Assembly (NCBI GenBank): GCA_002269645.1
Contig: NIVC01002828.1
Coordinates: forward strand, 1-43,870
Reading direction: 5' to 3'
Length of the DNA: 43,870 bases
Origin: Macrostomum lignano
Lineage: Eukaryota
A program made the translations under genes and the position numbers. Position 1 is the stretch's first letter; every line of letters starts with the position of its first letter. The notes below the pieces were generated by a model. The model was given only the letters and a program-made list of their open reading frames with translations. It searched no databases and was not told the DNA's origin. Below are positions 4,903 through 38,616 of the stretch, in pieces.

Positions 4903-5216
4903 CATGGAGGAAAGAATAGAATGGAGTGCTAATCTGAGCCAGTTATTTTTATCTCGCTCGATTTTCGCTTTTAACATCCCTTTCCCCCCGTTCCTTCCTA
5001 TTAACTGAAAGCATATTTTGATGCGAGCTCATACTATGCTGGGACAGACCTTTCAGAGGGGAACGAAAACGAAAACGAGACGAAAGATACTTTGTCTATG
5101 GCAGTCACGAGCCAATAGGAAAGAACGGGGGGGGGAAAGGGATGTTAAAAGTTAAGATCGAGCGAGATAAAAATAACTGGCTCAGATTAGCAATCCATTC
5201 TATTCTTTCCTCCATG
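4903..5216. mobile_element. Non-autonomous TIR element (P-element-like MITE), 314 bp
   Basis: About 95-bp inverted repeats starting CATGGAGGAAAGAATAG. Perfect 8-bp TSD GTCCCTCT at 4895-4902 and 5217-5224. CAT termini with an 8-bp TSD fit P (hAT not excluded). Confidence 0.8.
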
Positions 5217-6205
5217 GTCCCTCTTACTTTCCAACTGGAACCAGTGACAACCATTTCCAAAAACTTTTTACAATTACCATAGACAGCGACAGTTTAAGTA
5301 CAGTTTGATTGGTTCAAGAATAAAATAGTCTATGGTCGCAAGTGGGAGCCTCAATGAATTTCTCAGTGGTAGTGTGCTTCGGTATAAATGTCTATAGTAC
5401 AATACCAATAAAACAAGCATGCATCCATTAACAAGTCTATGGGCCAGAGCCTCGAGCTTGGCTCCCGCGTGCAGGCCGGTGGGTCGAGACGCAAGGAAAA
5501 TAATGCCTGAACTGAAGGAAGCAACGGCCAGAATGCATAGTTTTCGTTTAGCAAAGCAAAAGGCTAACGGCTGCTTCATTCGCCACTGGTAAGTTTAAAG
5601 CAATGTTGCTAGTATTAGCAATGAAATGTGAAAGTTTGTAAGCTAAGCTAAGCTAAACAAGGTGCTTCAACAAGTCAAGTGTAGGTTAGGTTCAAAAGTT
5701 AGGTTATTTGAAAAAATATTTTTTTCGAAAATCTTTTCGAAAGATTTCGAGAGTAACACGATTTTTCATGTTTTGTTATTCTGTTTTTATGGCAAACCGT
5801 AGATAAAAAGTTATGCCATTTTAAATCCTCATTTTTCAATCAATGTTTATTTGCACGGAAGGAAAATGAAAACTTTGAACAAAAATGTGGGCCTGGATAA
5901 AACTGGTTGATAGTGGCATGGTACGTTGCATTTGTGTATTTTTTATGCACAGGGTCGAATCAACTGTCATATACTCAGAAGGTTTCGCACAGTTGTCGCC
6001 AGACGATCTCCGCGTGCACGTAGCTCGAGGGGAAGGTCACATTTGCGTTTCGGAACGTCTCAATATTAGGCCGTATGAATAAAGTGAGCATTTGCATAAA
6101 CTCGACCGAATTCTCGATTCAGTATGAATAAAATGAGCACTTACTCACGAATAAATGCTCCAAGGTTTTTTCTATTAAGTTAATGGTCGACTGTTGAGTA
6201 TCTAC

Positions 6206-6297
6206 CATGGAGGAAAGAATAGGATGGAGTGCTAATCTGAGCCAGTTATTTTCTCGCTCGATCTTCACTTTTAGCATCCCTTCCCCCCCCCCGTTCT
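6206..6297 (+). mobile_element. Left terminus of a second copy of the CATGGAGG MITE family
   Basis: Near-identical to 4903-4998. Confidence 0.7.
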
Positions 6298-6630
6298 TCA
6301 TGATGTCAGTCTTTGCTTTGAGTTGACCCTTGATACACTCGTATTTTCCAGCTTCTTAAAGATATTCTTGGCGTAGGACTGCTTCCCTGCCTTGCTTAAA
6401 TCATCTTGGATTGCCACTACGGCTTTGTTCTTCTCTTCTACTACGCAAAGGGTCTTCCCCTTATCCAGCAAACAGGGATGCTTTACGACAAAACTTACAA
6501 AGCACTTGCTTGGACTCAGAGTAATTGCTCAGCTTTGAGCTGTTACTCCTGAGTTTTTGCTCATTTTATTCATACGGGCTCATAAGGATAGCCTTCAAAA
6601 ATGGCAGAATTCATGCCCGGAAGGGCCCAG

Positions 6631-7423
6631 GGGGTGTTTCATAGACCGCTTGTCAGAGTTACAAGTGCGACAAGTGAGCAGTAAGTAGCGGTTTCCGTTT
6701 CATAGAATTACAAGTGACAAGTGACAAGTTCTGACAAGTGACAAGTGAGTAGTGACAATTGCTAGTTACAAGCGGTTTGTTTCATAGACATTGCTTCTTA
6801 AAGAGTGAGCAGCGTTTGATTTTCGACAAGCTTAAGTAGTCCCGCGAGATTTGTCAAACTTGTAGCTATCAGATTTCGCTTCGCATGGCAACATGTTCGA
6901 TTCTGATTCGGACTCTTTGGACGAAGCTATTGGCCACATTGCATTGGCAAAGAGACCAGAATGTTTAAACCACGAATAAACTTTCAATTTGAGGATCGAA
7001 TTGATTCAATTCCTTCGTAATTATAGAGGAAAACTCTCCAAACACGCCTTTCTCTCGTTAAGCAGACGGAGTATGGCGTTTTTGTTTTCAACCGTGAGAG
7101 GCATTCTTACGCTTGCTATAAGTGGGCCAAACGTGTAAGATAGACTCTATGCCAAAGATTAAATATAATAAATATTGATAAATATCGTCTTTCCTCTATA
7201 CAGAACTAGATCATATCCAGGGTCCAACGGGAGTCGGCTGTGGCTGCGCCTGGGACGGACTTGATGTTTGGCCCATAGATATTTAGTTCACTACTCAGTC
7301 AGCTTGTAACTTGTCACTGGATTTACTCATACTCGTACAAATCAGTCTATGACACAAAAATCTGTAGCACTTGTAATTTTTTAACTTGTCACTTGTGGCT
7401 TGTCAAATCAATGAAACACCCCC
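6631..7423 (+). mobile_element. Non-autonomous PIF/Harbinger derivative with a frameshifted transposase N-terminal stub
   Basis: TIRs GGGGTGTTTCAT / ATGAAACACCCC, flanked by CAG and CTG. ACAAG-rich subterminal repeats. Stub MFDSDSDSLDEA...RMFKPRINF near 6892-7000 resembles the start of the 19839 transposase. Confidence 0.7.
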
Positions 7424-7754
7424 CTGGGGAGTGTTTCATATAATTTACAAGTTACAAGCTACAAGCTACAAGTTTAATAGCTACAAGCTACAAGTTTAAT
7501 AGCTACAAGTTTAATAGCTACAAGTTTAATAGCTACAAGCTACAAGTTTAATAGCTACAAGTTTAATAGCTACAAGCTACAAGTTTAATAGCTACAAGTT
7601 TAATAGCTACAAGCTACAAGTTTAATAGCTACAAGTTTAATAGCTACAAGCTACAAGTTTAATAGCTACAAGTTTAATAGCTACAAGCTACAAGTTTAAT
7701 AGCTACAAGTTTAATAGCTACAAGCTACGAGCTACAAGCAAAAGTGTTACACAA
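7203..7754 (+). repeat. Direct repeat copy 1 (552 bp) of segment repeated at 11035-11512
   Basis: Runs GAACTAGATCATATCC...AAAGTGTTACACAA. Appears identical to copy 2 apart from minisatellite length. Confidence 0.9.
7445..7740. repeat. Minisatellite of AGCTACA and AGTTTAAT units (15/22-bp units, 37-bp higher-order period)
   Basis: 14 TTTAAT-containing units counted. Confidence 0.95.
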
Positions 7755-7765
7755 AGTCTTTTCGC

Positions 7766-10700
7766 CCCAGTGAGCTTTGGGGTTGGAATTTTATAATACC
7801 TAGTGTTGTATCGATTATTTAAAGACTTTCAAGGCATTATTAACGCTGATGCTCCTAATATTTTGCGTCGTGTCATACATAAAGTTAGCCTAATAGATAA
7901 AGTAGGGCGAGAGTTGTAAAATGTCTCTAACGTCAAATGATTTATAGGAAGGGAATTAGGGATGTCGATTCCCCAGGGAATTATCTTATCGGGGACCCCG
8001 GTGAAAAGAAAAAATAAGTTAAAACAGCGGATCACTTAGATTGTAAGTGGAATTTTTTAAACTTTGATTTTAGCTTTGTACTACATGTTCAAGGCGCAGG
8101 GGTAAAAATTTTAAACAATGTTTTTTTAAACTGTATTTGACAATGTGGCATCACGAAATCGTGCGCGCACCTTTATCGGAAAAGTGCATTTGTTGGAATG
8201 CATGCTAAACAGCTACGCTCGTGAGAGGATAATTAATGAATGAGACTGTTTTTATAATCGGAATTTTATTTCTTGCATATATATGTAAATCACCATTTTG
8301 TCCTTGTCTAATAGGGAGTATATGTATGACACCCCCCTATGCGTCAGTGCCTGACGCATGACGCAGCGCTGCGCCTGCGTCAAGCCGTCAACGCAGACCA
8401 ACACAGCAGTCACTAGTCAGTAAGGCTTCTTTTTCCTGACGGGTTTCTTTTCTACGTGCAATTTGCTTGATTGAATGACTTATTAGTGAAAAAACAATCA
8501 AACGTGTATTGTGTTTCAAATACATGTAATGCATTGAAATAAGCAATTATGCGGTAAAAGAGCATAGACAGAGTTTCAATCAGCTTTCTGTGAATCAGTT
8601 TCTTATTTTAATGGCAAAAATTAAGTTACAAATGCATTTTTTCATATTTTTTCTCCCCAGGGTCCCCGGTTAAATTCCCCGGAGAGTATTCCCCGACAAG
8701 CTCCCCGGGGAGCACTCCCGGGGTCAACATCCCTAGAAGGGAAACTACGAGCATAAGTTCTGCAACACATATACAAGTAGCTAAGCATTAATAGACGCAC
8801 TGCACCGATAAAATGTAATGGAATTGCTCGAATCACCGACACCAAGACCCATAAAACTGGAGAAACTGGCAGGATATAGTAGATACATGTAGGTCAGAAT
8901 CAGAAGTGATCATGGGTGGGTGGGTCAAGTGATCATGGGTTCGACCTCGATTGTATTATTCCTTCTTAATCTTATGCAATTAATTGTAAATTAGGTATGA
9001 TATGAAGTAACAGTAATTATCCTTGACCATGCTAGAGTAAAGACAAGTCAAAGTCAAGTTAATAAAAATAGACACACAGTGTAACAATAACAATGGTTTT
9101 TAGAGCCATTTTTCTTGTCTGTGTTTGTCTTTGTACATACATGTACATTTGGGAAGACTTATCTGGACCCAATCCCTTCTTATTCTACATGTACGCTGTT
9201 TTGGGTATGGGGGTTAGAGTTGGGCCGTCTGACACCCCCCTCCCCCCCCCCTACCATAGTGGACTGGAGAGAAAGAAGCACATGCTATCGCTATTGGCTA
9301 GCCTGTCGTTCTCTTTCTCTTTACCTTCTGTCTTGTGTAGCGTACACTATCCAATGCACAAGGCCCAACTTTCCACTAAAGGAAGGTTCATATAGTCCGC
9401 CCATGGGCTTCCTCTTGCTTTCGCGTACACTCAAGGCCACTCACTCTCAACACCAGCCACTAGAGGCTTGTTTTAAATAATCGATCGATAATATTAAATG
9501 TACACTTGAAAGCTTGCTTTGGATCCTAGCAGAAGGGGGAGAAAGTGGCCAAGGCCACCACACCCCACAAGGCAGGCAGGCCGGCCCGAGTGCGATAACG
9601 AATGACAAAAAAATAGAAAAGTACAATTTACACATCAACTTTCAATACAATAAATACAATAATAGGTGCGGTATTAATGACAGTGTATTTTCGCACAAAG
9701 TAGCTACGTTCAAACCACCAGCACGTAAACAGCTAAAATTTCACTGTTTATGAAATTTTATAAAATTTAACACATCATTTTAGATATTGAAAACTTTTAA
9801 AGGAGGGTATTACTGTTGCATGTGACTATAAAATCGTGGTAGGTATAGCTGATGATGAAACTGGTGATTGGTATCTAGCTTTTTTGATAACTTAGCCGGT
9901 TAGACCCCGAAATAGCTATTGTAATTTGTAACGCTGGAGCCAAATACAAATACAATGGAGCAATTAGTTTCTCTCAAATCTGTCTCTGCCAGTGCCAGTT
10001 TAGTCCATAGTAAGTAACCAAAGTAAAATACCCATTAGTGGTCCCGTTTCTAATGTTTATAAATATTAAGCTTCAGTTTACTTTTGGCACAGTATGCAAT
10101 TTTGAAAATTCACCCTAATAACGGTTTGCACCAGCAGGAAAGCAACTATTTTGTTGTTGGAAATCGGATTAAGCAGTCAAAAGAGTGTATTTCTATGAAA
10201 AAAGGTACTTTTTTTCCATTTTTTCAAATATTTAAACAGGTTTCGCTCTTTCAATAAAAAAATCATCGCAGTACCTTAAAGTACAGTTAGTTTGGAATTA
10301 GATGACGGCGTTGAATTGTTTCTTCCATATTCCAAAAATTATAATGAGCACTTTTCCTCAAATCAGTTTGAGATCATGATTTTTAGTCTTTCGTCGATAA
10401 CTTTCTGATTTCAAATGTTTAAGAATTGAAAACTTCCACACTTGTGTATCTTTGAATTGCGCATCAATTGGTGCATAGTATGTATGCTTAACTATTAGCA
10501 GTATAGAAAAAAATGCAAAAAACTGTAAAAGTACATTTTCAATTTTTGCATTTTTTGCAACCAAAGTGCCAACTTTTTGATACAATTGAAAAAAACAACC
10601 CAATAATGTTATGCATCTTAGTAAGGCGCACCTATAACCCTCGAACATTTTTAGCTCGAGTTTTAATGTGCATGAGGAAATGCACTTTTGTAAAGACATA

Positions 10701-11035
10701 ATCTTAAGACAAACATTTCAACTGAAGCCTGTTCCTTTTCTCCGCAGTGAATCCATACAAAACTATACTCGTTAAATAGATCAGATTCTTCTCTTTAAAA
10801 TGACACCTCACTTGTGAAATTCGCACTTGTAGTTTTGAAGTTACAGCAGTTTTTGTGAGATTTTTCTTGTCATTTTTTCGATGCACACGTCTCATATTAT
10901 TATATTCGTCACAAGCCAGACCACCCAATGCGCTTCGCGCATTGGCTGGCTGTTTGTTCCTCATGCTCGGCACTTTGTGCCTCGCGCGTTCGCTCCGCTC
11001 ACCCCACAAACCCAAGGGAACTAGAGCTCACTGGG
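7766..11035. mobile_element. Putative non-coding TIR element with CCCAG termini (CMC/EnSpm-like)
   Basis: Perfect 11-bp inverted repeat CCCAGTGAGCT (7766-7776) / AGCTCACTGGG (11025-11035). No matching 2-bp TSD and no transposase. Confidence 0.45.
7957..8735. mobile_element. hAT-like MITE
   Basis: TIRs TAGGGATGTCGA / TCAACATCCCTA. 8-bp GAAGGGAA at 7948-7955 (one extra T before the TIR) and at 8736-8743. CCCCGGG subterminal repeats. Confidence 0.7.
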
Positions 11036-11512
11036 AACTAGATCATATCCAGGGTCCAACGGGAGTCGGCTGTGGCTGCGCCTGGGACGGACTTGATGTT
11101 TGGCCCATAGATATTTAGTTCACTACTCAGTCAGCTTGTAACTTGTCACTGGATTTACTCATACTCGTACAAATCAGTCTATGACACAAAAATCTGTAGC
11201 ACTTGTAATTTTTTAACTTGTCACTTGTGGCTTGTCAAATCAATGAAACACCCCCCTGGGGAGTGTTTCATATAATTTACAAGTTACAAGCTACAAGCTA
11301 CAAGTTTAATAGCTACAAGCTACAAGTTTAATAGCTACAAGTTTAATAGCTACAAGTTTAATAGCTACAAGCTACAAGTTTAATAGCTACAAGTTTAATA
11401 GCTACAAGCTACAAGTTTAATAGCTACAAGTTTAATAGCTACAAGCTACAAGTTTAATAGCTACAAGTTTAATAGCTACAAGCTACGAGCTACAAGCAAA
11501 AGTGTTACACAA
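11035..11512 (+). repeat. Direct repeat copy 2 (478 bp), including a minisatellite at about 11279-11497
   Basis: 10 TTTAAT units, 74 bp (2 x 37) shorter than copy 1. Confidence 0.9.
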
Positions 11513-11832
11513 CACTGCTTGTAGATTTCAGCCAAGAATCGTACAAGTTTGACAAGCTTGTAACTATTCACTTCATCGTCTATGGTAAAAAACTTACCTC
11601 TTTGGGGTGGTAGAGAGAACGACTCGAAGCTAAAAACAAAACTCATTATCATATAGACTATCGTTTTTTAATGCATTTTTTAATGAAGCTGTTAAGTCAC
11701 GATAAATTGCCATAGATTATGAGCGAGAAATTCACTGTTTTTATTCATGTAAGCAACAAGAACTTTAACAGGAAACAGATCGAGGATATAGCAAAGCAAA
11801 CGAATACCAAAGTACGAGCTATATATTCTTTG

Positions 11833-12663
11833 TTAGAAGTTGAACGTGCACCCATCGAAGAGGCAGTTGGCAAACATCGGCTGTTGCACACTTCGCATGT
11901 CAACTTGAGCTTGCTGCATGACTGTTGCACTAGTGGTTGCACTCGTAGTCGCCTCGGTTGGTGGGGCCAAATTGTCACTAACAGCGGTAGCAACCTTCCT
12001 GAGGGTTCTGTCACGCTTGCGTGCGAGATAATGTCGAACAGTGGACTCCGATCGTTGTCCCGTTACCGCCATTATCTCACCCATAGGCATTCCTTTGTCG
12101 AAAAGATCCGCAATACGCGTGACGCGTATGCAGTGATTCGTGTACTGCTTGGAGGGGTTGCACACACTACTAACGTGCTTCATGAATGCCGCCAACCAAT
12201 TGACACCGCGCACTTGCGTAGCAGAGAAGCGAATTTGTCCTCCCGAATTGTTAGTCAGAGGGCGCGGAAAGAACGAGGACGAATTCTGCGGTAACAAACT
12301 CTGATAATGCAGGATCAACTCCCGCTGAGCGCCGTAGATCCGACTCTGTTTGCGCTGAGTTCCCTTGCATTTTGTTGGATCGCTACTCTGGTTTTTTGTC
12401 TTTATCGGCGGCAAAGCAAGATATGGATTCCCATCAGCGTCGACTTCTTCTTGGAGCGTGCCAACTTGCTTTAGACTTGACAGGTGTTCTTGACCTCTCT
12501 CGCCCAGGACATACAGCAGCGTAAATAGTACTTCATCTTGCAACCGTTCAACCGAACGGTCAAAATAAGCACGCATTTTCTGTAAATCACCTTCTTCTAT
12601 TGGCTCGTGCTGATTGACAGTGCCTCCATCAGCATGAAAATGCCGCACCTTTACTCGCAGCAT
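11833..12663 (-). CDS. Crypton (DUF3504-like) tyrosine recombinase, catalytic domain, 276 aa; N-terminus disrupted
   Basis: HEPIEEGDLQKM, RLQDEVLF, GERGQE (R), TNHCIR (HxxR), TGQRS (His position), RHY (Y), C-terminal FDGCTFNF. An upstream out-of-frame segment reads DISGL...QWTGL. Confidence 0.85.
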   Translation of the reverse strand: MLRVKVRHFHADGGTVNQHEPIEEGDLQKMRAYFDRSVERLQDEVLFTLLYVLGERGQEHLSSLKQVGTLQEEVDADGNPYLALPPIKTKNQSSDPTKCKGTQRKQSRIYGAQRELILHYQSLLPQNSSSFFPRPLTNNSGGQIRFSATQVRGVNWLAAFMKHVSSVCNPSKQYTNHCIRVTRIADLFDKGMPMGEIMAVTGQRSESTVRHYLARKRDRTLRKVATAVSDNLAPPTEATTSATTSATVMQQAQVDMRSVQQPMFANCLFDGCTFNF

Positions 12664-12825: not shown

Positions 12826-15467
12826 CCACGAGAAGACTGATGGTAAGCAGTGCTTACCATGGCCCAACTCAACTTTCTGCCGACCAGAGTAAATTAAATT
12901 CTATGGCTAAATTGGTAGTATCCGTTCTTGCCGGATATGGTAAGCACTGCTTACCATGAGTATTCTAGGTTTTCTTGTTTTCTGACAATTATAGGCTTTG
13001 CATTCTACATTCTTAATTGTTTCGTCAGTAACGTTCCTTTGTGCATTGGTTCAAAAACACACATTTTGTTCGAAGAGGCTTCAATAAAGTTTGAAATCGA
13101 ATTAACTAATAACAGAGTTAAACAACAAAAACGAGAATGAAAAACCTGATAATATTCTGGCTGATCGAACTTACTGCGCATACAGAGCGTACGGCTCGTG
13201 CACTACAGAAACTATAACTAGTGAAACTAATATAAATTATCAAGAGTTGTGAACTAATTTGAGCTAAAGACAAGAGCCAAAAACAGTAAACAGAAAGGAT
13301 GAAAACTTTAGTTTTAGCAGAAAGTGAGTCCATTCTGCCGATGCTCGTACTTTAACGCTGCGAATGCCAGCGTTGGAAGCAATCTAACAAACAAAGTCCC
13401 GGGCATCCTGGACATCGGCTGCAGAAATAAACTGTGCGCCGGGAACTGGCAGAACTGTAGCACATTCTGCACCTTTTCGTAGGTCTGGGCTGGGTAGGAC
13501 GACCTGGGATTTTCTCCGGAAAATGCTGCTCAGAGACTGCAACTGTTTGCAGCATGGAAGCCGGTCGCTTCCTGCCATTTCCAGTTCGCTCTATCAAATC
13601 ACGGAAGCTGGCTTCGAGATATCTGATAAAAGTATTCTGGCCACCACACTTGCAGTACAGAACCCAAGCGTTGCGCACCATTTGAAGGCACATATGCAAA
13701 CCCAGCTTGTGGAACCATTTTGTTGTCTTTCTGCCGGCATCATAGGGCTGCAGGGTGCCGTCCAGCGTGTCCACTCCACCCATGCAGCGATTGTAAGTTA
13801 GCACACTGCGGCTCTTCTGCACTGCCACATGCTGACCAGCTCGATTGATCTTGACTTTCTCTGCCTTTGACGCAACGTCCTTCGTGTCCAGCAAATACAA
13901 GGTCTTGACTCCACTCTGCTTTCTCTCGACAGCCTTCACAATCAGAACACGTCCCTTCCTCGCGAAAGCTACATTATTCGGAACCACTAAAGCCTGCCGA
14001 AGCTGAGCCGGAACTCCTCGGTCTGGCCTCACGGTGCCCGTCAAGAACGTTGAATGGTCGATAAGGAACTGGGACAACCTGTATGATGTAAACCAGGTGT
14101 CGGTAAATATTCTGTACCCCTGGTCCAGAATGTCCTTGGCCAGCTCAGCTACGATTCGCTCACTGAGAGAAAGATGTTCCCAGTCGTGTGTGGAGCCAAA
14201 CTTCCGATTTTCTTCTGGAGTTGAGTGCACAAGGAAACTGAAGAGATAAGCAGACTTCGACTCACACAGACAGTACATTTTCATGCCGGACTTCGCCCGC
14301 TTTGTTGGAATGTACTGCTTAAAACGAAGTCGGCCCTTAAACAGTATCAATGACTCATCAATGCTCACTTCACATTCAGGCCGGTAGTTGTTCTTGCAAT
14401 AAGTTTGGAGCAGATTCATGAATGGACGAATCTTGTGTAGTGGGTTGGCGCTTGCTTCTTCCCTGCTGTCGTAGAAGCGCAGAAATGTCAGCAGCTGTTT
14501 GAATCTATCGCGAGCTAACGCCTCGGGCTTCTGAAAGTAAGGTATGCAGTGAAAATCGTCTGTGCTCCAGTAGTCATGTAGCTCGGACTTTTTTTCAGGC
14601 CCATGTACAAGTGCATGCCGACTAGCTTTTTCATCTCGCTTGCGGTGCAGTCCCGCCAGCTAGATACAATGGACGGAAGGACGTCCGTCTCAGGATCCAG
14701 TTCCATCAGCATGGTGGCCACCTTGGCGTTTGTCCATTCAGCGAGGCGTTGGAAAAGCTCTTCAGAAAGAAACATTTGTAAAAATAAAGACTTATCCTTC
14801 TCAACATCCTCAGGAATTAAAAAGTTCGGATTGAGGCCAGCAGTTCCGGTAAATTCAAAACATTCTGTCCCTTCATCGGACCCAGGCTCGACAAGTCGCC
14901 AAAAATTCTCAACTTCAGCAGTATCGCCATCTGCAAACTCCTGTTCTTCCTCGCCGTCAGGCCCTTCTATGGTTGGAGGATTGCCATCCAGTGCTTCTTC
15001 GCCAACCTCCTCGCCAGGCTCCTCGTCTATTGTTAAGTAGGAGTCGAGGCTTGCTTCACTGTCAGAGGTCATGTAGTCGATCTCAGAGGCAGAAGCCATG
15101 TACTTTAGGATATCAGTGAGTAAATACTGTGTCAAATTTAGCGAGAAAAGGCTAACAAACAAGATGGTAAGAGTGTTACTGTAAGAAAGCTAGTTTTATA
15201 GCAAAGGGGACTTGCTGTCTGAGCACAGATTTCTATGGTAAGCAGCGCATACCAAGCAGGCAGCAAGTGAAACTGTTTTATTGGCTAAAGCAGTAGTGCT
15301 GTTCATTTCCTTCCCGTCTAGCGTGTCAGTTTGAGCCAAGCTGGATCAGTAAGCCTAGCCAGCAGGAATGGAAGTGACATGCTATGCCAGAAAATATCTA
15401 TGGTAAGCACTGCTTACCAAGCAGTCGGGAACAGACAAATTATGGATTCTGGTTAGGCAGGAAGAGG
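12826..15467 (-). mobile_element. piggyBac DNA transposon
   Basis: TTAA at 12822-12825 and 15468-15471, CC..GG ends. Four subterminal palindromes TGGTAAGCASTGCTTACCA near 12841, 12938, 15237 (variant) and 15402. Confidence 0.8.
13352..15099 (-). pseudogene. piggyBac transposase, about 582 aa, single frameshift in the A7 run near 14588-14594
   Basis: Acidic N-terminus, SIDESLI / FTDTWFTS / GGVDTLD catalytic aspartates, C-terminal CxxC...CxxC...C...C cysteine-rich domain. Shifting frame restores KSELHDYWSTDD...RDRFKQLLTFLRF. Confidence 0.92.
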
Positions 15468-20310: not shown

Positions 20311-20313
20311 CTG

Positions 20314-21412: not shown

Positions 21413-21439
21413 CAGAATGTCAAAAGTCGAAAACGAGCA

Positions 21440-21491: not shown

Positions 21492-21499
21492 GTCCTCAT

Positions 21500-30377: not shown

Positions 30378-31436
30378 ATGGATTTTCTGCTTGTGACTGC
30401 GCTGCTCAGGCAAACCGCCGACCGTGCACTGGGACGATATCGTCAACTTCGGGATCATACCGACCCCTTGTGCATGCGCGATACCGAATTAGTTGACCGT
30501 TACCGCTTTCCGCGTGTCGTAATTTTGGACATCGTATCACTTGTACGAGAAGATATTCAGCGACCAACGAGGAGAAGCAACGCCATGACTCCCATTTTGA
30601 TGGTGTGTATTGCTCTGCGATTCTTTGCTAGTGGTGCATTTCTTCGGATCATGGGGGACACATGTAACACCGGAATTACTTCCGCCTCTCGTGCTGTTGG
30701 CATAGTTTCTGCAGTGCTGGCAAGCCACCTCACGGAGTTTGTTAGTTTTCCAAGAAGCCACGCTGAACTGAACCATACAATAGCTGGTTTCCATTCAATA
30801 GCAGGATTAACGCACGTCATTGGTGCCATTGACTGTACTCATTTCGCCATCAAGAGGCCTAAAAATAACGAGCACGTGTTTGTGAACAGAAAATCGTTTC
30901 ACTCAATCAATGTGCAGGCCGTGTGTAACGCATCAATGTTATTCACTAATGTTGTGATTCGCTGGCCCGGTAGTACGCACGATTCATTTATATTCAGCAA
31001 CTCGGCATTGAAAGAAATTCTATCAGAAGGGCGAGTGGTTGGAGTCCTCGTTGGAGACAGTGGCTATCCGCTAAGGCCGTACCTTATGAAAGTATTCGAC
31101 ACCCCCAGAGACGCACGAGAGACAGATTTCAATCGGCGGCTACGACAAACTCGAGTGAAAATATAATGTTCCTTTGGGATTCTGAAGTCACGTTTTCAAT
31201 GTTTGAATCGCCATTCTGCTAGTCTCCGATTCACTCCCAGCAAATGCTGCAAAGTAATGAGCGCATGTATTGTGCTGCACAACATTGCAACGAGCAGGGG
31301 TGTTCCTTTAAATGTGCCTATCCAGCATCACCCGAATGATGACACGGACGATGTTGTTGTTGACGATGAAATTTGAGCTGGAAGAGCGGAGAGAATTCGC
31401 ATCATGAATGCAATACAGGCAAATCTTCATGCCTAA
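30378..31436 (+). pseudogene. Harbinger transposase with TAA replacing the catalytic Glu codon (31164-66) and a late TGA
   Basis: DRYRFPR, IALRFFASG, IGAIDCTH, RKSFHSINVQAVC, RWPGSTHDSFI, LVGDSGYP, RVKI*CSFGILKSRF, CIVLHN. Confidence 0.92.
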
Positions 31437-31672
31437 CTAATCAGACAACTGACTTAATGACGATACGTTTATTACAGTGCTCTTTACAGCTTCCTCCACT
31501 CGTTCTGCTGTTTGTAATTCTTTAAACGTGTATATTTCAAACTTGTTACATCCTAACTGTTTATTATATGAAACAGCTGAAATAAACAGTAAAAAACTTT
31601 AAACAGTTAAGTAACGATAGAAATGTTTGTCCAAAAGGGCACCCAAATTGTAGTCCATGTTCCGCTGTAGTA

Positions 31673-32386
31673 CTACATATTCCTTGTTTCAATAGCCAAA
31701 CGCGCTCTCTCGATTGCCAGTCGCTCACGCTCTACAGCCAGCCGCTCTTTCTCCACTGTCAGACGCTCCTTCTCGACCTGCATTCTCTGCTGTTCACACC
31801 TGTAAATGCCTTCCATGTCGCGAGAGCATTCTCGAACTCTCTTTGGTGCACTTGCAGCCGCGAGGTCAGGTGGGTTTTTGACCGGGCTAGAGCGTCGAAC
31901 AGGAAAGTCGTTCAGCAGATTGTCTTTCGCCATCTTCGCGGCCGCGAGGTCAGGTGGGTCATTGACCGGGCTAGAGCGTCGAACCGGAGAGTCGTTCAGC
32001 ATTGATTCGTATCCACCAGAGACTCCAGAGATGCTCTCTGGGGCCATCATTGCAGCTGCATTCTGCTCAAGTGGAGTCAGCTCTGAAACTGTGGGTGGTC
32101 CACCGCCAGTAGCCACTTTGTCTTTCCGTACTAGGGCTGTCTTTGCTTTGACGTTGGACTTCACGTCGCACCACTTCTTCCTACATTCTTCGCCTGTACG
32201 TTTATTTCCTCCGATCACATTCACACGAGCTGCGATGGTCTCCCAACAGGCCTTCTTTCTCCTCTGCATCTCAACCTTTTGATCCTTTGAGTTAACAATG
32301 TCCAAGTATTTGTTGACATAGCTAAGTAATTTTTCTATTTCACCGGACGAAAAGTTGGGCTGCCTCTTGGATGGGTTAGACGACAT
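31673..32386 (-). CDS. Harbinger Myb/SANT-like DNA-binding protein, intact, 237 aa
   Basis: RQPNFSSGEIEKLL...KKACWETIAARVN...RTGEECRKKWCDVK...TGGGPP, coiled-coil tail. 84-bp (28-aa) internal duplication. Confidence 0.9.
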   Translation of the reverse strand: MSSNPSKRQPNFSSGEIEKLLSYVNKYLDIVNSKDQKVEMQRRKKACWETIAARVNVIGGNKRTGEECRKKWCDVKSNVKAKTALVRKDKVATGGGPPTVSELTPLEQNAAAMMAPESISGVSGGYESMLNDSPVRRSSPVNDPPDLAAAKMAKDNLLNDFPVRRSSPVKNPPDLAAASAPKRVRECSRDMEGIYRCEQQRMQVEKERLTVEKERLAVERERLAIERARLAIETRNM

Positions 32387-32979
32387 GTTCAATAGTGTCT
32401 TGGCTAAAGTTGAACTTGATTTGGCTTGACTAAAGCTTCACGTGCTATGCGATTAGTGCTTTATGTGCGTCTTACGACTGATACCGAGCAGTCGTAGGGT
32501 TAAGATCAACCTTACGAAAGACCATTAGACATACGAACGTTTCGAGAAACAGTCTTTTGCGCAAAGTTACGAACTCGTAAAGTTGCGATCAATCTTACGC
32601 ATAGCTAACTTGCGAGCCCTTCGAGCAACCCGCAAGTGTAGCTTACCCAACTTACGTCTATGGCCGATCGTAAGTTGCTTTCGAGAAAGACCCCCCTGGT
32701 TTGTCCGGAAATCTTATGCGCAGTCGATCATTGATTCCTTTTAGCGTCAGAACAGGATTGTTTTCCAGTAGTTCAGTACAATGCTGCAGCATCTCCTCAT
32801 CAAACTTCGAGTACCGCCTTGCGCCCTTGGGTCGTTTATATCGGCGGCCTGATCGAACTATTGAATAGGCGGTGGCTCTCTTGATTTTCATGAGCTCGAT
32901 AAAACGAGACCGATACTTAAGGGAACTGAGAAACAAATGCTGCCGCTCGCACCGGGATTAGGCACCGAGGCCTCTGGGC

Positions 32980-33352
32980 TCAGAGGTGGGTCTTCCTTCG
33001 CTTAGGCTCCTCGGTAAAAGCCTCGGCATAGGCCGTGGCCATCTGCCTGATGTGTTCCACGGACACACCCATCTGCTGCAGGAGCTCAATGCCTTCTCGT
33101 GTCATGGCTCCGCTCTTTCCTTCTCCCACATCAGTCAGGAGGTCGATGTCGTCTGCATCCAGCATCATACCGGCGTGGCGCTTCGAGGCGAAGTTAGCGT
33201 TCAGCTGGCCTCGCTTGACGGCGGCCGCTCGCACCACGGCGGTAAGGTTGGGAAAGATGCTCTGGTGCAGACGAGGCGTATGGTCCTCGACCTTCTTCTT
33301 CTGACTCAATTTCTTCGTCACCTTGTTCTTCAATGATCTCATCGTCACTCAT
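32980..33352 (-). CDS. Uncharacterised ORF upstream of the IS630-like transposase, inside the TIRs
   Basis: GC3-rich open frame of about 120 aa ending PKRRKTHL. An overlapping frame starts with acidic MSDDEIIEEQGDEEIESEEEG. No family recognised. Confidence 0.5.
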
Positions 33353-34070
33353 ATCTATGCTCGATATCTACACTTGCAGTCGAAAAAAACAGAAAGCTGG
33401 GGTGAAATGAAATGAAAGGATCGACAAAGCCTCTTTGGATGTAAACTGTACATGAAATTGAACATTCGTCTGTGGTTGAAATCGAATGTGTTTCGCTGAG
33501 TTTGAATGCAGATTGCCGAAATTGAGTGAAAAGTCTGCACGCGTCAATAAATTTACCCATAGACAAGCAGACAAGTTTGAGACAGAATTAAATTGAATGC
33601 AGATTGCCGAAATTGAATGTGGTTCGCTGAGATGGAATGCGAGCATCCTTAAATTGAATGAAGATTTGGTCGGCTAAATTTAGATTGCCGATTTTGAATG
33701 CCAACTTGCTGAAATTGAATGCGACTTTGGTTGAAATTGAATGCAAAAAGGTGTAGGACTTAGAGTCTGCACAAGTACTGCATTTGAAATACAGTTAAGG
33801 TGTAGTTGAATGCGTAGCACTTGTGCACGAAATATTATGTACATACTGTGCAATTGTTTCTGGATATGCGCTTTGTTCCTTCGCGCGCTATTGCTTGCTG
33901 ATAAGTGCACAGGTTTTTGCGTGTTCAAATACACCAAAATGCAGCACTTGTGCAGAATCTAAGAAATCCCTCTCTTCTGTCTTGATTCCCTTCTTAGATT
34001 GGCGCTGTCGAAATTGAGTGCAGTTTGCCGAAATTGAATGCAGTTTTATCAAAATAGAACACAATAAGGT

Positions 34071-35500
34071 GTACTGTAAGCTTCAATTTAATCGCAGATA
34101 CGGAAATCAGACTTGTGAGACTGAAAATTTTTTTGTCTATGGTCGACACTTGTTGGCATAGCGGATTTCAATTTAATACTGGGGGATCAATTTGATCATT
34201 CTAATCATATAACGTTAGATATCCAGTGCTATAACACAAGTCGTTTACTTATCGTTGAGAAAAACTGAACACAAGAAACAAATAAACGCTTTAGCGCTGG
34301 ATGTCGTCGAGTCAAAAAAGTTTAGATGACTGGCTGTCTGGCGATGAAGGCTGGAATAAGCCTCAGCATCTGCCGGTACCAGCCTCCGCATTTTGCAACG
34401 GTCACTTCAAGGGTTGCGTCCTCTGCAAACCTATGTAGGACACGGATTTGCCACTCTCGTAGCGAATGACCATCAGGCGGAGTGTCGAGCTCTTCTAGCA
34501 ATGTGGTTTGATGGCTGCCTTCAGGCAGGCGTGCGCGTTCTTCACACGATTGAGGAATGGAGAGTATGGAGGCAATGTCACCAGGCGCCAAGCGGGCTGA
34601 AATTGATCTGGGATTGTCACTCCATGATGAAAACGGGCTCCATCCATGTTCACACAGAACTCCTCGCCATCAGGTACATCACCACGACTCGTCACGCTTT
34701 TAACCAGATCATTGATCAACGTCTGGAACCTGGCTGCCGTCATAGTTTCTCCGAGGATCATATGATGTACCAGGCCGAGATTAGGTGTAATTGCTTGCAT
34801 GAAGTTCACTTGCACTCCACGTTGCATGGTAACTTTAAGTCTAGCCTTCTTGCCCCTTATGCTGCGAACTTGAGTCCGACGTGTGTAGATGTTAAAACCT
34901 TCCCCTCGATGAAAATCAAGTGAATCTGAGGGGACAATCCAGTCGACCCCTGAGCAAACTCTTGCCGCAAAATTCGATTCTCTGCAGAATTTCTTGCGAT
35001 TGGAATGTCGGCATCTGGGCTAAGGCATTTTAGAGTGATGAGCTGCTCGTTTAACATTCGGCTTACAGTTGAGTCACATACGAGCGTACTTGCAACTCCA
35101 GATCGACTTCGCGAAGCTTAAGCTTCATTTCTCGCAAAGTTAGCTGAGGGTTTTCTTCGATTCATTACAGCAGTTGCTGCACATGAGCGTCAGTAAGTTT
35201 CACTTGACGAGCACCTCCTCGACTTAGTCGGTTCCGGCGACCAATGAGTTCGTACCGCCTTCGAATCGAGTAAACAGTATGGACTTTCACTAACAAGCTT
35301 GTTAAAAACCAGTTACGATGACAGTAAAAATGTGCATTGAATACATAAAGTGATCGAATTGATTCCCCCAGGATTAAATTGAGCTCCGCTATGCCAACGA
35401 GTGTCGACCATAGACAGAAAATTTTCAGTTTCGCAAGTCTGATTTCCGTATCTGCGATTAAATTGAAGCTTACAGTACCAACTAGGCCGCAAAAAAGGAA
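34071..35500 (-). mobile_element. IS630/Tc1-like element A, decayed transposase
   Basis: TIRs ...GTACTGTAAGCTTCAATTTAATCGCAG... The left end lacks the outer 25 bp or so. IEENPQLTLREM, MDGARFHH, LPPYSPFLN. Confidence 0.85.
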
Positions 35501-35763
35501 TATTTAGTGTGGTAGTTTGTAAAGCAGTTTCCGCGCTGCACTTTCTTGGCATGCACAAAATCTTTCGGTCTTCGGTCTTTCGGTCTACTTACAGTCACGA
35601 CTCGGATATGTGCCACATGTGTATGTAAATAGCTATAAGCTGGCTTGTCATGCCCCTCAGCTCTATATAACTCGTGCTGAAGATGAAGTCGAAGGCTACA
35701 AGCATAAGTCAACATGCAGCCATAGACATACTTACGCTATAATAGACATAATAAAATGAATAA

Positions 35764-35952
35764 TTAAGGCCTATAAGTTTTTTCTGCATGAGGCGTTTCC
35801 CGGATTCCCGCCCCCTTTTCTAGCTGTCCATGGGTTGTAAGCGATACTTTAGGCTTCGCCTGAAACCGTGCGTGCAGCCCTGCTTTGATCTCGACCAGAG
35901 TAATACTGGGATTTGCCTCAATCCTGTTCTCCATTGAGTCCCTAAGAACCAT
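35764..35952 (-). pseudogene. IS630/Tc1-like HTH fragment
   Basis: IEANPSITLVEIK...FQAKPKVS aligns with LEENPFLTLKEM...FPEKPQVS. Confidence 0.6.
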
Positions 35953-36962
35953 AGACTAAATAAAGAAGCTTGGAATTATAAAAAATATATTGTCAGCAGA
36001 TCAAATTGTCGTCTACATGACAGAACTCCAGTACAAACTGTCGATTCCTTTTTGCGGCCTAGTTGGTACTGTAAGCTTCAATTTAATCGCAGATACGGAA
36101 ATCAGACTTGCGAGACTGAAAATTTTCTGTCTATGGTCGACACTCGTTGGCATAGCGGAGCTCAATTTAATCCTGGGGGAATCAATTTGATCATTTTATG
36201 TATTCAATGCACATTTTTACTGTTATCGCAACTTGTTTTTAGCTTGTCTTTTACATCATATGATCCTCGGACAGACTATGACGGCAGTCAGGTTCCAGAC
36301 GTTCATCAATGATCTGGTGCAAAGCGTGAAGAGTCGTGATGTACCTGGATGGCGAGGAGTTAGTTCTGTGTGATCATTGATGGAGCCCGTTTTCATCATG
36401 GAGTGACAATCCCAGATCGATTTCAGCCCGCTTGGCGCCTCGTGACATTGCCTCCTTACTCGTCGTTCCTCAATCCTGTGGAGAACGCGCACACCTGCCT
36501 GAAGGCAGCCATCAAATCACATTGCTAGAAGAGCTCGACACTCCGCCTGATGGTCATTCGCTACGAGAGTGGCGAATCTTTGTCCTACATAGGTTTGCAG
36601 AGGACGCAACCCTTGAAGGGACCGTTGCAAAATGCGGAGGATGGTACCGGCAGATGCTGAGGTTTATTCCAGCCTTCATCGCCAGACAGCCAGTCATCTA
36701 AACTTTTTTGACTCGACGACATCCAGCGCCAAAGCGTTTATTTGTTTATTGTGTAGTTCTGTTTTCAGTTTTTGTCAACGATAAGTAAGCGAATTTTGTT
36801 TCAACACAGGATATCTAACGTTATATGATTAGAATGATCAAATTGATGCCCCCAGGATTAAATTGAACTCTGCTATGCCAACGAGTGTCGACCATAGACA
36901 AAAAATTTTCAGTCTCGCAAGCCTGATTTCCGTATCTGCGATTAAATTGAAAGCTTGCAGTA

Positions 36963-38616
36963 TCGCTTTTGACGCTCTAGATAAGACTTTAGACATTCAA
37001 AATAAGACTGCATAGGATCGCAAGCAAGGCCAGGCTAGCCACGGCCAGAGCATGCCCAGTCTTGGCTGCAGGAATGGCTTGGCCATAGACTAAAAAATGG
37101 AATATCAAAATGAGAATAAGACGCTCAATATGAGACCGGGAGTGAACGTAATTTATTTGCTTTTTGGCAGTCACCATACAAACAGCTAAGGAGAAATTAG
37201 GCAATAAACAAGAAGCAGAATAGCATATCGAAATGTTTAGTCCCTCACTGAAGTCAGCCTGGCGGACTGCGTTAGAAGGCCATTCGATTTAAGCACCTGC
37301 CAAAGTGCCTCTGACAGCGGAGTTCCCATCTGGCCGCCTTCTCAGCTGTGATGACGAGGCCGACTGCCTCCCGTGCAATCCGCTCCAGCAGCATGAAGCG
37401 CCACTCCTCTTGTGTGAAATCTGCAGGTGGAGCAGCCTCTTCCTCGACTAGCTCAGGGTTCGCCAGCATCTGGCGAATGCGCGCCTTGAGTGCTGAGTTC
37501 GCGAGCTCCACAGGATTGAGGAAATGCGAGTATGGTGGCAGAATCCTGATGGAGATCTGGTTCTGGAGCTGCTGAGGGACCCTCGCCGCACGATGAAAAT
37601 TTGGCCCATCCATCAGGATGACCCATTGGGCTCCCTGGTCCAATTGGTTGCATCGCTCGCACAGGGCGTCCACAAACTCTTGGAAGCGAGCAACGGTTTG
37701 TCCACCGCGGTAGACATTCGAGTGCAGGAGACCAAACTCAGTCGCAATCGCCATGCACACCGAGACATTTGGCCCGCGTTGCGTTGTCACAGTTCGCCGA
37801 ATAGGACGGCCTTTCAGCGCACGACCCTGAGAGCGCCTGGTCCAGAGATTGAACCCGGTCTCGTCCAAGAAGACAGTGCGAGTCTCTTGAGCCAAATTCA
37901 GCATGAACATGGCGTATTCGTGCCTGGCTTCGATATTTGCCTCAGAATTTGTCCTCATCCTCACGTCAGTGCCTTTGACAGCCAGCTTCACGGTGTGTAG
38001 CAGACCGTGCAGCATTCGGTCCACGCACTTGTAGCTGACTTGCGGCTTTTCCGGAAACTGCGTAGCCAGACGTGAGGACATTTCCTTGAGTGTGAGGAAG
38101 GGATTTTCCTCCAGCGTCTCAGTCAGGAAGTCTCTCATCTCGTTGTCAGCCTTGCAATTTTCTTCTCTCCGACCGCCACGAGGTAGGGATTCAACTCTGC
38201 CATGGAGGCGGAACTCCGCAGCGATCCTAAAGGCGGACGCTCTCTTGATCTTGAAATTTGAGCGGCAGCTAGGATGGTTGATCCATTGTTTACTGCGTCG
38301 ATCAGACGCTGACGGTCTGCTGCAGGAATCGATGATGCCATCACAGTGAAATCCAAGGGGTCAGATGCAACCCAAGGGGTGAAGAAGGAGAGCTGGCTGA
38401 GGGTCAGAGGGTTAGAGCGATATCTGAAGGCTTTCACACTCAGTCTCATATTGAGCGTCTTATTCTCATTTTGATATTCCATTTTTTAGTCTATGGCCAA
38501 GCCATTCCTGCAGCCAAGACTGGGCATGCTCTGGCCGTGGCTAGCCTGGCCTTGCTTGCGATCCTATGCAGTCTTATTTTGAATGTCTAAAGTCTTATCT
38601 AGAGCGTCAAAAGCGA
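36963..38616 (-). mobile_element. Young IS630/Tc1-like element, 1654 bp, about 175-bp near-perfect TIRs
   Basis: TIR TCGCTTTTGACGCTCTAG. TA TSD at 36961-62 and 38617-18. The empty site is reconstructable from 35470-35490. Confidence 0.95.
37272..38341 (-). pseudogene. IS630/Tc1-like DD33E transposase, about 356 aa, one 1-bp frameshift near 38255
   Basis: N-terminal HTH, LPRGGRR linker, VFLDETGFN, ILMDGPNFH, LPPYSHFLNPVE. 33 residues between the second D and E. Confidence 0.9.

Follow-up and report, generated by a model that had tools for sequence, protein, structure and literature searches.

A recurrent octamer upstream of transposon genes in Macrostomum lignano, a candidate binding site for a host protein

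Organization of the window

The window, the whole 43,870-nucleotide stretch of Macrostomum lignano DNA that was analysed, consists of a DNA-transposon nest flanked by two host genes. It is ~99% identical to contig NIVC01000301.1 of Mlig_3_7. The octamer CCATAGAC was matched exactly 27 times on both strands across the whole window, at every coordinate and strand given in an earlier description made without database searches (the sequence-only reading). The octamer sites are also present in the independent Mlig_3_7 assembly and are therefore not an artefact.

No match was found in the host genes of the window (1-4600 and 39000-43870), in a direct-repeat-bounded block at 7203-11486 or in the reverse-transcriptase region, in line with the earlier statement that the host gene and the LTR element lack the octamer. 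It was also absent from the piggyBac element, the RT/YR element and the region upstream of ORF 11833-12663. In the Macrostomum-type DNA examined, only ~75 kb in total, the octamer occurred 0 times in 18 kb of host genic DNA compared to 27 times in the 34 kb transposon nest (P 7e-7, or P 3e-5 with independent sites only). The few host promoters inspected (Translin, TEX47, DNAI3) did not contain it.

IS630-like elements

Elements A, B (copies Ba and Bb), C and D are IS630-like, and the octamer was found in the TIRs or inverted arms of all four families, as the sequence-only reading had it.

26404-27076, minus strand: element A, an IS630-like remnant that has inverted arms of ~170 bp and contains an HTH ORF (26540-27004)
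26472-26479, minus strand: octamer in the left arm of element A, pointing outward
27001-27008, plus strand: antisense octamer in the right arm of element A, preceding the likely transposase start (MANQLRL...) by ~100 nt
27073-33836, minus strand: element D, IS630-like, with a DDE_3 ORF at 29425-30006 and TIRs of ~340 bp
29128-29135, minus strand: octamer in the left TIR of element D, intact, 10 nt from the duplication made by the insertion of element E
33557-33564, plus strand: octamer in the right TIR of element D, pointing outward, ~272 nt from the outer end
34071-35478, minus strand: element Ba, IS630-like, with a DDE_3 ORF at 34495-34827 and TIRs of ~130 bp
34135-34142, minus strand: outward-pointing octamer in the left TIR of Ba, 64 nt from the end
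35408-35415, plus strand: octamer in the right TIR of Ba, pointing outward
36066-36962, plus strand: element Bb, a shorter, non-coding deletion derivative of family B in opposite orientation to Ba
36129-36136, minus strand: octamer in the left TIR of Bb
36892-36899, plus strand: octamer in the right TIR of Bb
36960-38619, minus strand: element C, a young IS630-like element with 187-bp TIRs that are 98% identical and transposase ORFs at 38482-38135 and 38138-37272
37083-37090, plus strand: octamer in the left TIR of element C, pointing inward, 123 nt from the end
38489-38496, minus strand: sense octamer in the right TIR of element C, preceding the first ATG by 6 nt

Two insertions interrupt element D: element E lies in the left TIR, Harbinger H1 in the transposase ORF. 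The transposases of the DDE_3/IS630-like lineages B, C and D share 29-38% identity. The octamer stands at both ends of the long-TIR elements because the TIR duplicates it. It was absent from the TIR tips, and its position and orientation within IS630-type TIRs were not fixed. The octamers of C, L003 and L004 point inward, those of A, B, D and L087 outward. The distance to the element end was 64-272 nt in the IS630 lineages and the distance to the start codon was 99-216 nt. Upstream distances were 215 nt for the copy at 33557, measured to the inferred transposase start of element D, and 148 nt for that at 38489, measured to the conserved transposase start of element C (MASSIPAADRQRL).

Harbinger elements

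Two Harbinger elements, F and H1, carry the octamer, and their transposases share 33-37% identity.

17000-21400, minus strand: Harbinger F (ends uncertain), with a transposase at ~19839-18855 (minus strand) and family-specific CTTGTAG subterminal arrays
17097-17104, minus strand: octamer in the left subterminal region of F, 453 nt upstream of ORF start 17558
17296-17303, plus strand: octamer in F, 254 nt upstream of ORF start 17558, sense
17357-17364, plus strand: octamer in F, 193 nt upstream of ORF start 17558, sense
20460-20467, plus strand: antisense octamer in the right subterminal region of F, preceding transposase ORF start 19839 by 621 nt
20978-20985, plus strand: octamer in the right subterminal, CTTGTAG-rich region of F
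30019-32690, plus strand: Harbinger H1 (approximate ends), with a DDE_Tnp_4 transposase at 30294-31166 (plus strand)
30182-30189, minus strand: antisense octamer in the subterminal region of H1, preceding the transposase ATG at 30294 by 104 nt
32656-32663, minus strand: sense octamer in the subterminal region of H1, preceding the ATG of the Myb-like gene at 32386 by 270 nt

The second gene of H1 is a Myb/SANT gene (31673-32386, minus strand) convergent with the transposase gene. In both Harbingers each of the two convergent genes is preceded by an octamer, and both subterminal regions carry it. H1 is nested in element D; its two octamers are in direct rather than mirror orientation, inside its own subterminal repeats and at least 21 nt from the junctions. 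H1 also has family-specific repeat words of the binding type (cgtaag/aacttgcg).

Element E and tyrosine-recombinase-like genes

Two tyrosine-recombinase-like ORFs are present in the window. Element E, the only tyrosine-recombinase element of the window with mappable junctions, encodes a small tyrosine-recombinase-like protein.

27335-29107, minus strand: element E, 1.77 kb, with 13-bp TIRs (AAGAATACTGRGC) and a 10-bp flanking duplication (TGTCTCAAAC)
27601-27608, plus strand: octamer within element E, 266 nt from its left end
28894-28901, plus strand: antisense octamer in element E, preceding ORF start 28634 by 260 nt and forming a convergent pair with 28969
28969-28976, minus strand: sense octamer in element E, preceding ORF start 28634 by 335 nt

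The junctions of E carry TGTCTCAAAC and not the octamer. The octamer of the target is intact 10 nt away, and the target sequence is uninterrupted in the other TIR of element D. The recombinase ORFs of the window resemble one located beside a reverse transcriptase, a DIRS/Ngaro-like layout. Neither the Harbinger copies nor those of element E have IS630-derived flanks.

Octamers outside delimited elements

The remaining copies lie outside the elements listed above.

5094-5101, minus strand: octamer ~12 nt past a ~95-bp repeat unit; a CCAAT box precedes this copy by 12 nt
5277-5284, plus strand: octamer in a convergent pair with 5328, with a CCAAT box between the two
5328-5335, minus strand: octamer with TATAAA ~50 nt off, polymorphic (GTCTATGG in the window, GCCTATGG in Mlig_3_7)
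5435-5442, minus strand: octamer, member of the 5094-5435 cluster
11578-11585, minus strand: octamer between a CTTGTAG array and the 3' end of the tyrosine-recombinase ORF at 11833-12663
35720-35727, plus strand: octamer in the 587-bp spacer separating Ba and Bb
35949-35956, plus strand: octamer in the same spacer, with TATAAAAAA ~30 nt downstream

The apparent inverted repeats at 5094-5435 are copies of the ~95-bp unit, which occurs four times in either orientation, and the octamers of the cluster lie outside these units. Element ends or a target duplication were looked for around 5094-5435 and none could be defined. The cluster had been described as a P-like MITE; it adjoins the ~95-bp repeat copies and bears no P-like mark. 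An element end was likewise sought at 11578 and none was definable. The proposed location of octamers at Crypton ends was not borne out, and no mapped junction carries the octamer.

Octamer frequency and independence of contexts

The expected number of matches was 0.68 from dinucleotide shuffles, none of 100 of which reached 27, and 0.81 from a first-order Markov model, close to the single occurrence that had been estimated. TIR-pair or family copies account for 10 of the 27 matches (26472/27001, 29128/33557, 34135/35408/36129/36892 and 37083/38489), and 17296 and 17357 are a local duplicate. After collapsing of copies 20 contexts remained, without similarity between their flanks. When every repeated copy from self-BLAST was masked, CCATAGAC was the top-ranked octamer of the window (20 observed compared to 0.96 expected from an order-3 Markov model), which answers the concern that all matches might trace to one repeat family. 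Self-BLAST grouped only the TIR copies.

Information content was limited to the eight octamer positions, the flank profile being flat but for weak preferences at -4 (T), -1 (R) and +1 (A). The 24 single-mismatch variants totalled 35 occurrences against ~23 expected, and this near-background level marks CCATAGAC as a sharp word. CTTGTAG is even more abundant but is restricted to arrays of one family. The carriers of the octamer belong to at least three superfamilies, namely DDE_3 (IS630-like), DDE_Tnp_4 with Myb (Harbinger) and the tyrosine-recombinase element; the claim that unrelated transposon families share it thus held.

Placement relative to gene starts

Seven of ten transposon gene starts had an octamer 99-335 nt upstream, compared to a random mean of 2.3 (P ~0.001); promoter proximity is here defined by distance to start codons, some of them inferred. 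In the strict set of starts supported by Pfam or tblastn the figure was five of eight (P 0.016). The interval of 100-270 bp upstream of Harbinger and IS630 starts in the sequence-only reading is thereby confirmed and widened to 99-335 nt. Orientation and distance from the element ends varied between lineages.

IS630 relatives in other assemblies

Five IS630 relatives at 94, 69, 66, 64 and 44% identity all carried the octamer within unrelated flanks. They came from five different samples, with hosts inferred from run numbering and one host-gene homologue, and gave seven matches in 7.7 kb against 0.12-0.24 expected (P 6.5e-9). No octamer was found in the 183 kb of 82 more distant relatives at 25-41% identity, presumably from other hosts.

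Discussion

The octamer is enriched, occurs in independent contexts, lies near transposon gene starts and does so with varied geometry. Diverged IS630 lineages keep it, and neither distant relatives nor host genic DNA contain it. The balance tips modestly towards CCATAGAC being a cis-acting site of one Macrostomum DNA-binding protein, most likely a host transcription factor, in the promoter regions of several transposon lineages. A host-protein binding site is suggested because the exact word recurs just upstream of the genes of unrelated families. Independent adoption of a host site by many DNA transposons, the first alternative of the sequence-only reading, fits all the tests; that the protein is a transcription factor is what we infer. 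Typical transcription factors seldom have so sharp a site, an exact 8-mer almost devoid of near-matches, and this speaks against one. The absence of the octamer from the host promoters inspected, from piggyBac, from the RT/YR element and from the region upstream of ORF 11833-12663 also weighs against this reading, as does the modest P of 0.016 for the strict set of gene starts. The octamer fits only in part motifs such as those of YY1 (GCCAT core), Cdx or SMAD (AGAC), and none of the Macrostomum papers searched contained the word.

The proposed mechanism would involve one sequence-specific Macrostomum protein, presumably host-encoded, that recognises the octamer. Unrelated DNA transposon lineages would each have evolved or kept the site in the subterminal region that holds the promoter, ~100-350 nt upstream of their genes. 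Apparently functional regardless of orientation, and frequently multiple, it would be of the upstream activating site type rather than a core promoter element. Binding may activate transcription, for instance where transposition is profitable, as in germline or stem cells.

Several other explanations were weighed. Descent of the excess from one repeat, or an effect of chance or composition, has next to no probability. Ten octamers are TIR copies of four families, but this source is ruled out by the 20 contexts left after masking against 0.96 expected and by flanks without information beyond the 8-mer; no shuffle approached the count. The second idea of the sequence-only reading, a tyrosine-recombinase crossover core (attachment core) marking Crypton targets or ends, is very improbable. 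The two recombinase-like ORFs and the insertion of E only 10 nt from an octamer speak for it. It was rejected because the mapped insertion junctions do not coincide with the octamer: E joins at TGTCTCAAAC beside an octamer left intact, in sequence uninterrupted in the other TIR of D, and the H1 octamers lie within that element's own subterminal repeats. Most copies, moreover, are symmetric inside TIRs, and 11578 is at no element end. It is quite unlikely that the octamer serves a transposon-encoded protein (an IS630-like transposase or the Harbinger Myb-like protein) and reached other elements by hitch-hiking or in old nested fragments. Ten of 27 octamers are in IS630-type TIRs, close IS630 relatives keep the word and paired-like HTH domains can read 8 bp or more. 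However, it is missing from the TIR tips, to which the transposases of this superfamily bind, its place and direction in the TIR are not fixed, and lineages only 29-38% identical would need one shared specificity. The 82 more distant relatives are entirely without it, the Harbinger and E copies are free of IS630-derived flanks, the carriers include two Harbinger lineages and E rather than one transposase family, and the family-specific repeats (CTTGTAG arrays, the H1 words) look different.

Two further explanations retain the host protein and change its role. A host architectural protein could bind the octamer as a cofactor site for assembly of the transposition complex at element ends, without a transcriptional role, in the manner of the IHF sites within bacterial insertion sequence ends; we regard this as unlikely. 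Octamers are subterminal at both ends, including those of non-coding derivatives such as Bb, they are conserved in the TIRs of diverged IS630 relatives, and they occur in cut-and-paste elements of several superfamilies and not in the RT-bearing element. Against this, the distance from the end varies more than 4-fold and the orientation flips between IS630 lineages, while the distance to the start codon is tighter; the H1 copies are direct, each before a gene, and piggyBac has none. A mark for a host function other than activation, such as an insulator or boundary protein or a sequence-specific repressor of many transposons, is rather unlikely. The octamers are clustered and orientation-independent at element borders and host genic DNA is free of them. 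Transposons should lose a repressor site, yet it is kept across lineages at 44-94% identity with changing flanks; for an insulator, the sequence gives no means of distinguishing its role from that of an activator.

A host-factor site acquired convergently can be compared with several known systems. Crypton transposons also have tyrosine-recombinase-like ORFs, but in the window no mapped junction holds the octamer, E has TIRs and a 10-bp flanking duplication, and the ORFs point to a DIRS/Ngaro-like layout. Tc1/mariner elements of the Sleeping Beauty IR/DR type have transposase-binding direct repeats that are family-specific, repeated at the TIR tip and fixed in position and orientation. The octamer-bearing IS630-like elements share with them long TIRs and an internal conserved word in both arms. 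The octamer differs in having no tip copy, in its change of orientation between lineages and in being common to Harbingers and a recombinase element. Bacterial insertion sequences and phage Mu contain IHF sites within their ends, degenerate in sequence and at a defined distance from the terminus. As is proposed for the octamer, these IHF sites serve one host protein in subterminal regions of unrelated mobile elements; they are prokaryotic with defined spacing, whereas octamer spacing from the ends is not conserved. To our knowledge, they have no eukaryotic sequence-specific counterpart.

Transcription-factor sites common to many retroelement families include large-Maf/Traffic jam sites in Drosophila gypsy-type LTRs and the YY1 site in the human L1 5' UTR. 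As proposed for the octamer, a host factor of the expressing tissue acts at a site at or near the element promoter, but these are retroelements with known factors. Some octamer copies read (C/T)GGCCATAGAC and have GGCCAT in common with the L1 YY1 site, but the 3' half (AGAC) departs from the YY1 consensus, and in half of the copies the base before CCAT is A instead of G.

In M. lignano itself LTR retrotransposon families independently acquired heat-shock elements, whose function was established by reporter mutagenesis (PMC12801592); ONSEN in Arabidopsis is a comparable case cited therein. The reporter assay method is established for this organism (PMC5730564, PMC12801592). The heat-shock elements have a canonical motif and factor (HSF), whereas the octamer is a candidate site that matches no factor we can name. 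Their carriers are LTR retrotransposons, unlike the DNA transposons of several superfamilies that carry the octamer, and the LTR/RT element of this window has none. In both cases unrelated lineages of the same organism carry a short site in 1-4 copies near the promoter.

Octamer Count and Independence

A pattern search of the whole window found 27 exact matches to the octamer CCATAGAC (reverse complement GTCTATGG), both strands pooled. All 27 coordinates from an earlier, sequence-only reading were reproduced exactly. Its estimate of about one copy by chance agreed with dinucleotide shuffles (mean 0.68, maximum 5) and a first-order Markov model (0.81). Ten matches are copies within four TIR families (26472/27001, 29128/33557, 34135/35408/36129/36892 and 37083/38489). 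Comparison of oriented flanks showed sites 17296 and 17357 to be a local duplicate, and the remaining sites had nothing in common outside the word. One representative was kept per copy group, giving 20 contexts. The profile of these contexts carried information in the eight core columns only, with a weak T at -4, R at -1 and A at +1. For the sequence-only reading, an origin of all copies in one repeat family would have been a refutation; 20 contexts without related flanks were found, and common descent was ruled out because the flanks are unrelated.

Every repeated copy detected by self-BLAST (3.1 kb) was then masked. CCATAGAC was the top over-represented octamer of the masked window, with 20 copies where an order-3 model predicts 0.96. 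Next in the ranking were words overlapping it and one family-specific word. The 24 single-mismatch variants totaled 35 against about 23 expected, so the word is sharp. Their slight surplus is of the kind expected if old copies decay.

Window Make-Up and Second Contig

Pfam scans showed the window to be a nest of transposons, which lies between two host genes. The features are:

left flank, host gene for an axonemal dynein intermediate chain, DNAI3/WDR63-like
13352-15162, piggyBac (Pfam scan)
TE nest, three Harbinger-type transposase genes, one with a Myb/SANT partner (Pfam scan)
TE nest, several DDE_3/IS630-like transposases (Pfam scan)
TE nest, reverse transcriptase and tyrosine-recombinase-like ORFs (Pfam scan)
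right flank, RING/Sina-type host gene

The window ORFs had no exact match on record, and the TE ORFs are unannotated in the public assembly. The octamer was absent from piggyBac, the reverse transcriptase region and the 7203-11486 block in the window pattern search.

The dynein exons were 91% identical to a Macrostomum lignano protein. The contig encoding this protein, NIVC01000301.1 of GCA_002269645.1, aligned to the window at about 99% and also carried the octamer sites, with the single exception of 5328. At 5328-5335 the window reads GTCTATGG and the second contig GCCTATGG, a single T/C change. The sites are therefore no assembly artefact, and ordinary mutation acts on them. This difference is a natural variant which could be used for testing function.

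About 3.4 kb is enclosed by two 452-bp direct repeats of 100% identity, 7203-7654 and 11035-11486; a 37-bp tandem array forms the end of each. The second contig (15191-15742) has one copy and lacks the enclosed segment. The 7203-11486 block is thus present or absent between assemblies or haplotypes, through either duplication or recombination between the repeats. The palindrome TACATGTA occurs seven times against 0.5 expected (8521, 8884, 9138, 9186, 16367, 16519 and 29243), and four copies fall within 670 bp inside this assembly-specific 3.4-kb block. An intron-less ORF of 593 aa (41927-43708, minus strand) lies upstream of the same-strand RING/Sina-type exons. It had no Pfam domain, a search of 5.8 billion proteins gave one homologue (47% identity), and it is apparently a lineage-restricted gene.

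Octamer-Carrying Elements

Elements were resolved by self-BLAST, inverted-repeat search and tblastn of the window's own ORFs, with some ends and starts inferred. The principal carriers are:

about 17.0-21.4 kb, Harbinger F, transposase 33-37% identical to that of Harbinger H1
26404-27076, A, IS630-like remnant with inverted arms and an HTH ORF
27073-33836, D, IS630-like, TIRs of about 340 bp
27335-29107, E, 1.77 kb, small tyrosine-recombinase-like protein, three octamers
about 30019-32690, Harbinger H1, inserted in the transposase ORF of D
34071-35478 (Ba) and 36066-36962 (Bb), IS630-like family B, TIRs of about 130 bp
36960-38619, C, young IS630-like, 187-bp TIRs 98% identical

The catalytic regions of B, C and D share just 29-38% mutual identity. 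The claim that the octamer lies in the TIRs of four IS630-like families was borne out by the ten matches in four TIR families. In C it lies 123 nt inside each TIR, pointing inward; the gene-side copy is 6 nt ahead of the first ATG and 148 nt ahead of the conserved methionine, which aligns with the start of related transposases. It points outward in B, 64-70 nt from the TIR tips, and in D, about 272 nt from the tip. In A an antisense octamer is found about 100 nt ahead of the likely start.

Both octamers of H1 are on the minus strand inside its own subterminal repeats; one precedes the transposase ATG by 104 nt and the other the Myb gene ATG by 270 nt. The 11-mer CGGCCATAGAC is found on both sides of H1, yet a target-site duplication was rejected, because the subterminal repeats extend beyond both copies and the interrupted D transposase puts the junctions elsewhere. 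The subterminal regions of Harbinger F have three octamers on the left and two on the right. The words CTTGTAGC/AGCTACAAG (53 copies; 7446-7728, 11278-11486 and 20057-21347) are commoner than the octamer. Outside 37-bp tandem arrays they occur only in the right subterminal region of Harbinger F, and they are probably the family's own protein-binding repeat. The octamer at 20978 (20978-20999) is directly followed by ATTTGTAGATC. In a Logan contig from another species (L001, 2811-2841) CATTTGTAGATC precedes the single octamer, a resemblance due perhaps to chance, perhaps to an element type in common.

Element E is inserted in the left TIR of D. It has 13-bp TIRs and a 10-bp flanking duplication, TGTCTCAAAC, and the right TIR of D is the uninterrupted target, giving a clean filled/empty pair (27325-29117 and 33575-33584). 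Two of its octamers precede its ORF, at distances of 260 and 335 nt. For an element that encodes a recombinase, having TIRs together with a 10-bp duplication is unusual in itself. E-type termini were found nowhere else, and a PDB sequence search with the recombinase-like ORF gave no useful match. The region 23831-25211 (minus strand) shares 28% identity with the N-terminal half of the recombinase-like ORF 11833-12663, and is on the same strand as the reverse-transcriptase ORF, immediately downstream. Such an arrangement suggests a retroelement of DIRS/Ngaro type, and the recombinase ORFs of the window may therefore not be Cryptons.

The 5094-5435 cluster has four octamers next to copies of a repeat unit of about 95 bp, with a CCAAT box between two convergent octamers and TATAAA about 50 nt beyond. 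The unit starts with CCATGGAGGAAAG and ends in a C-run then GTTC, and its four copies are in both orientations (4903-5002, 5114-5218, 6204-6298 and 21417-21495). It has the look of a dispersed repeat of very short length and not of the TIRs of one element. The P-like MITE assigned here by the sequence-only reading was not supported.

Placement Relative to Genes

An octamer was present within 350 nt upstream at seven of ten TE gene starts, some of them inferred, at distances of 99-335 nt. This confirmed and widened the 100-270 nt previously described for Harbinger and IS630 starts. When 27 sites were placed at random in the nest, the mean was 2.3 starts (P about 0.001). With Pfam- or tblastn-supported starts only, five of eight had an upstream octamer (P 0.016). 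Orientation relative to the gene was mixed and copies often came in twos or threes. Mild AT-richness was seen downstream (63% vs 55%). AGAC/GTCT words and CCAAT boxes were not clearly enriched near octamers as a partner motif, and CTTGTAG was rejected as a partner, being confined to one family.

GTCTATGG contains ATG, but the resulting ORFs are short at all sites but one and sense-strand distances to the ATG are inconsistent, so a start-codon context was rejected. A splice acceptor, splice donor and small-RNA seed site were likewise discarded on the mixed orientation. The octamer does not act at the RNA level, since its strand relation to genes is inconsistent. RNA genes and RNA-gene promoters were rejected too, as Rfam and tRNA searches gave no match.

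Relatives in Other Assemblies, Host DNA and Literature

The element C transposase was used as a query and found relatives on element-length contigs from other assemblies. All those of at least 44% identity with at least 100 nt of upstream sequence carried the exact octamer in differing flanks.

Octamer position in relatives of element C
L003, 94% identity, 6 nt before ATG
L004, 69% identity, in both TIRs, inward, 145 nt before start
L005, 66% identity, 206 nt before ATG
L091, 64% identity, 216 nt before ATG
L087, 44% identity, in both TIRs, outward, 106 nt before ATG

Together these five had seven octamers in 7.7 kb, where 0.12-0.24 would be expected (P 6.5e-9). Distant relatives (80 metagenome loci of 25-41% identity and two AT-rich Logan contigs at 36%) had none in 183 kb, with 2.8-5.6 expected; the word is therefore not general to the transposase clade. 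L087 came from run SRR31628394. The only homologue of the 593-aa host ORF was in run SRR31628437, a nearby accession number, on a contig with one octamer. We infer that the two runs are from related flatworms.

The absence of the octamer from host genes held in 18 kb of genic DNA, comprising the host-gene parts of the window and 8.6 kb of upstream host genes from the Mlig_3_7 assembly (Translin, TEX47 and their promoters). At the TE-nest rate the probability of zero is 7e-7, or 3e-5 with independent sites only, for a set that takes in no more than three or four host promoters. In all, the Macrostomum-type DNA examined came to about 75 kb. A full-text literature search for the octamer gave primer noise only, and none of the searchable Macrostomum papers had the word. 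The 2017 genome paper and a multi-flatworm motif preprint describe no such motif. The octamer is treated as undescribed, short of proven new.

Discussion

The octamer behaves as expected of a site bound by some trans-acting protein that is common to the host cell. It is a DNA site retained by several unrelated elements in the region holding their promoters while the surroundings diverge, in either orientation and often in several copies. We lean toward a promoter-proximal activator site. Heat-shock elements have been experimentally shown to be independently acquired by several M. lignano LTR retrotransposon families (PMC12801592), and this reading is favored because such convergent gain is already shown in the same species (PMC12801592). 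Of the two proposals made from the sequence alone, the host-factor site is thus kept in part: unrelated flanks, promoter-region placement and retention in relatives speak for it, and its P-like MITE and Crypton-end settings were not supported. The other, a recombinase attachment core making other transposons Crypton targets, is contradicted. The insertion of E is bounded by TGTCTCAAAC and the 13-bp TIRs, its junctions lack the octamer, which stands untouched 10 nt away, and at 11578 no element ends.

Other proteins could read the same site. In the IS630-type elements the octamer is 99-216 nt from the start codon and 64-272 nt from the tip, and its orientation flips among lineages; that it serves a host architectural cofactor for transposition is unlikely. 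Another host function, such as that of an insulator or repressor site, is about as unlikely. A site for a transposon-encoded binder is slightly less likely still: a family-specific transposase or Myb binding repeat has the pattern of the CTTGTAG arrays, with many copies in one family, whereas the octamer is found in several.

If the octamer is a functional site, many DNA transposon families would have one factor upstream of their expression or mobility, and this in a flatworm that regenerates and has a mostly repetitive genome. The cell types licensing transposon activity would become testable by established M. lignano transgenesis, as would the way unrelated elements converge on one host input and the host's own use of the site. 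A functional octamer would also serve as a compact part with which reporter promoters could be built or tuned. As an annotation signal it is a strict 8-mer flagging the promoter-bearing ends of unrelated elements.

A working octamer would extend the heat-shock-element case from LTR retrotransposons to cut-and-paste elements and to another, putative regulator. More speculatively, and with little confidence, a dedicated octamer-reading protein might be a handle that macrostomid flatworm DNA transposons from several superfamilies have in common, either as a shared, sequence-specific cofactor required for their mobility (IHF-like) or as one recognition code for host control. Such a protein might be host-encoded or of a domesticated transposase or Myb type. 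IHF is bacterial, and as a mobility cofactor the putative octamer protein would be its eukaryotic counterpart.
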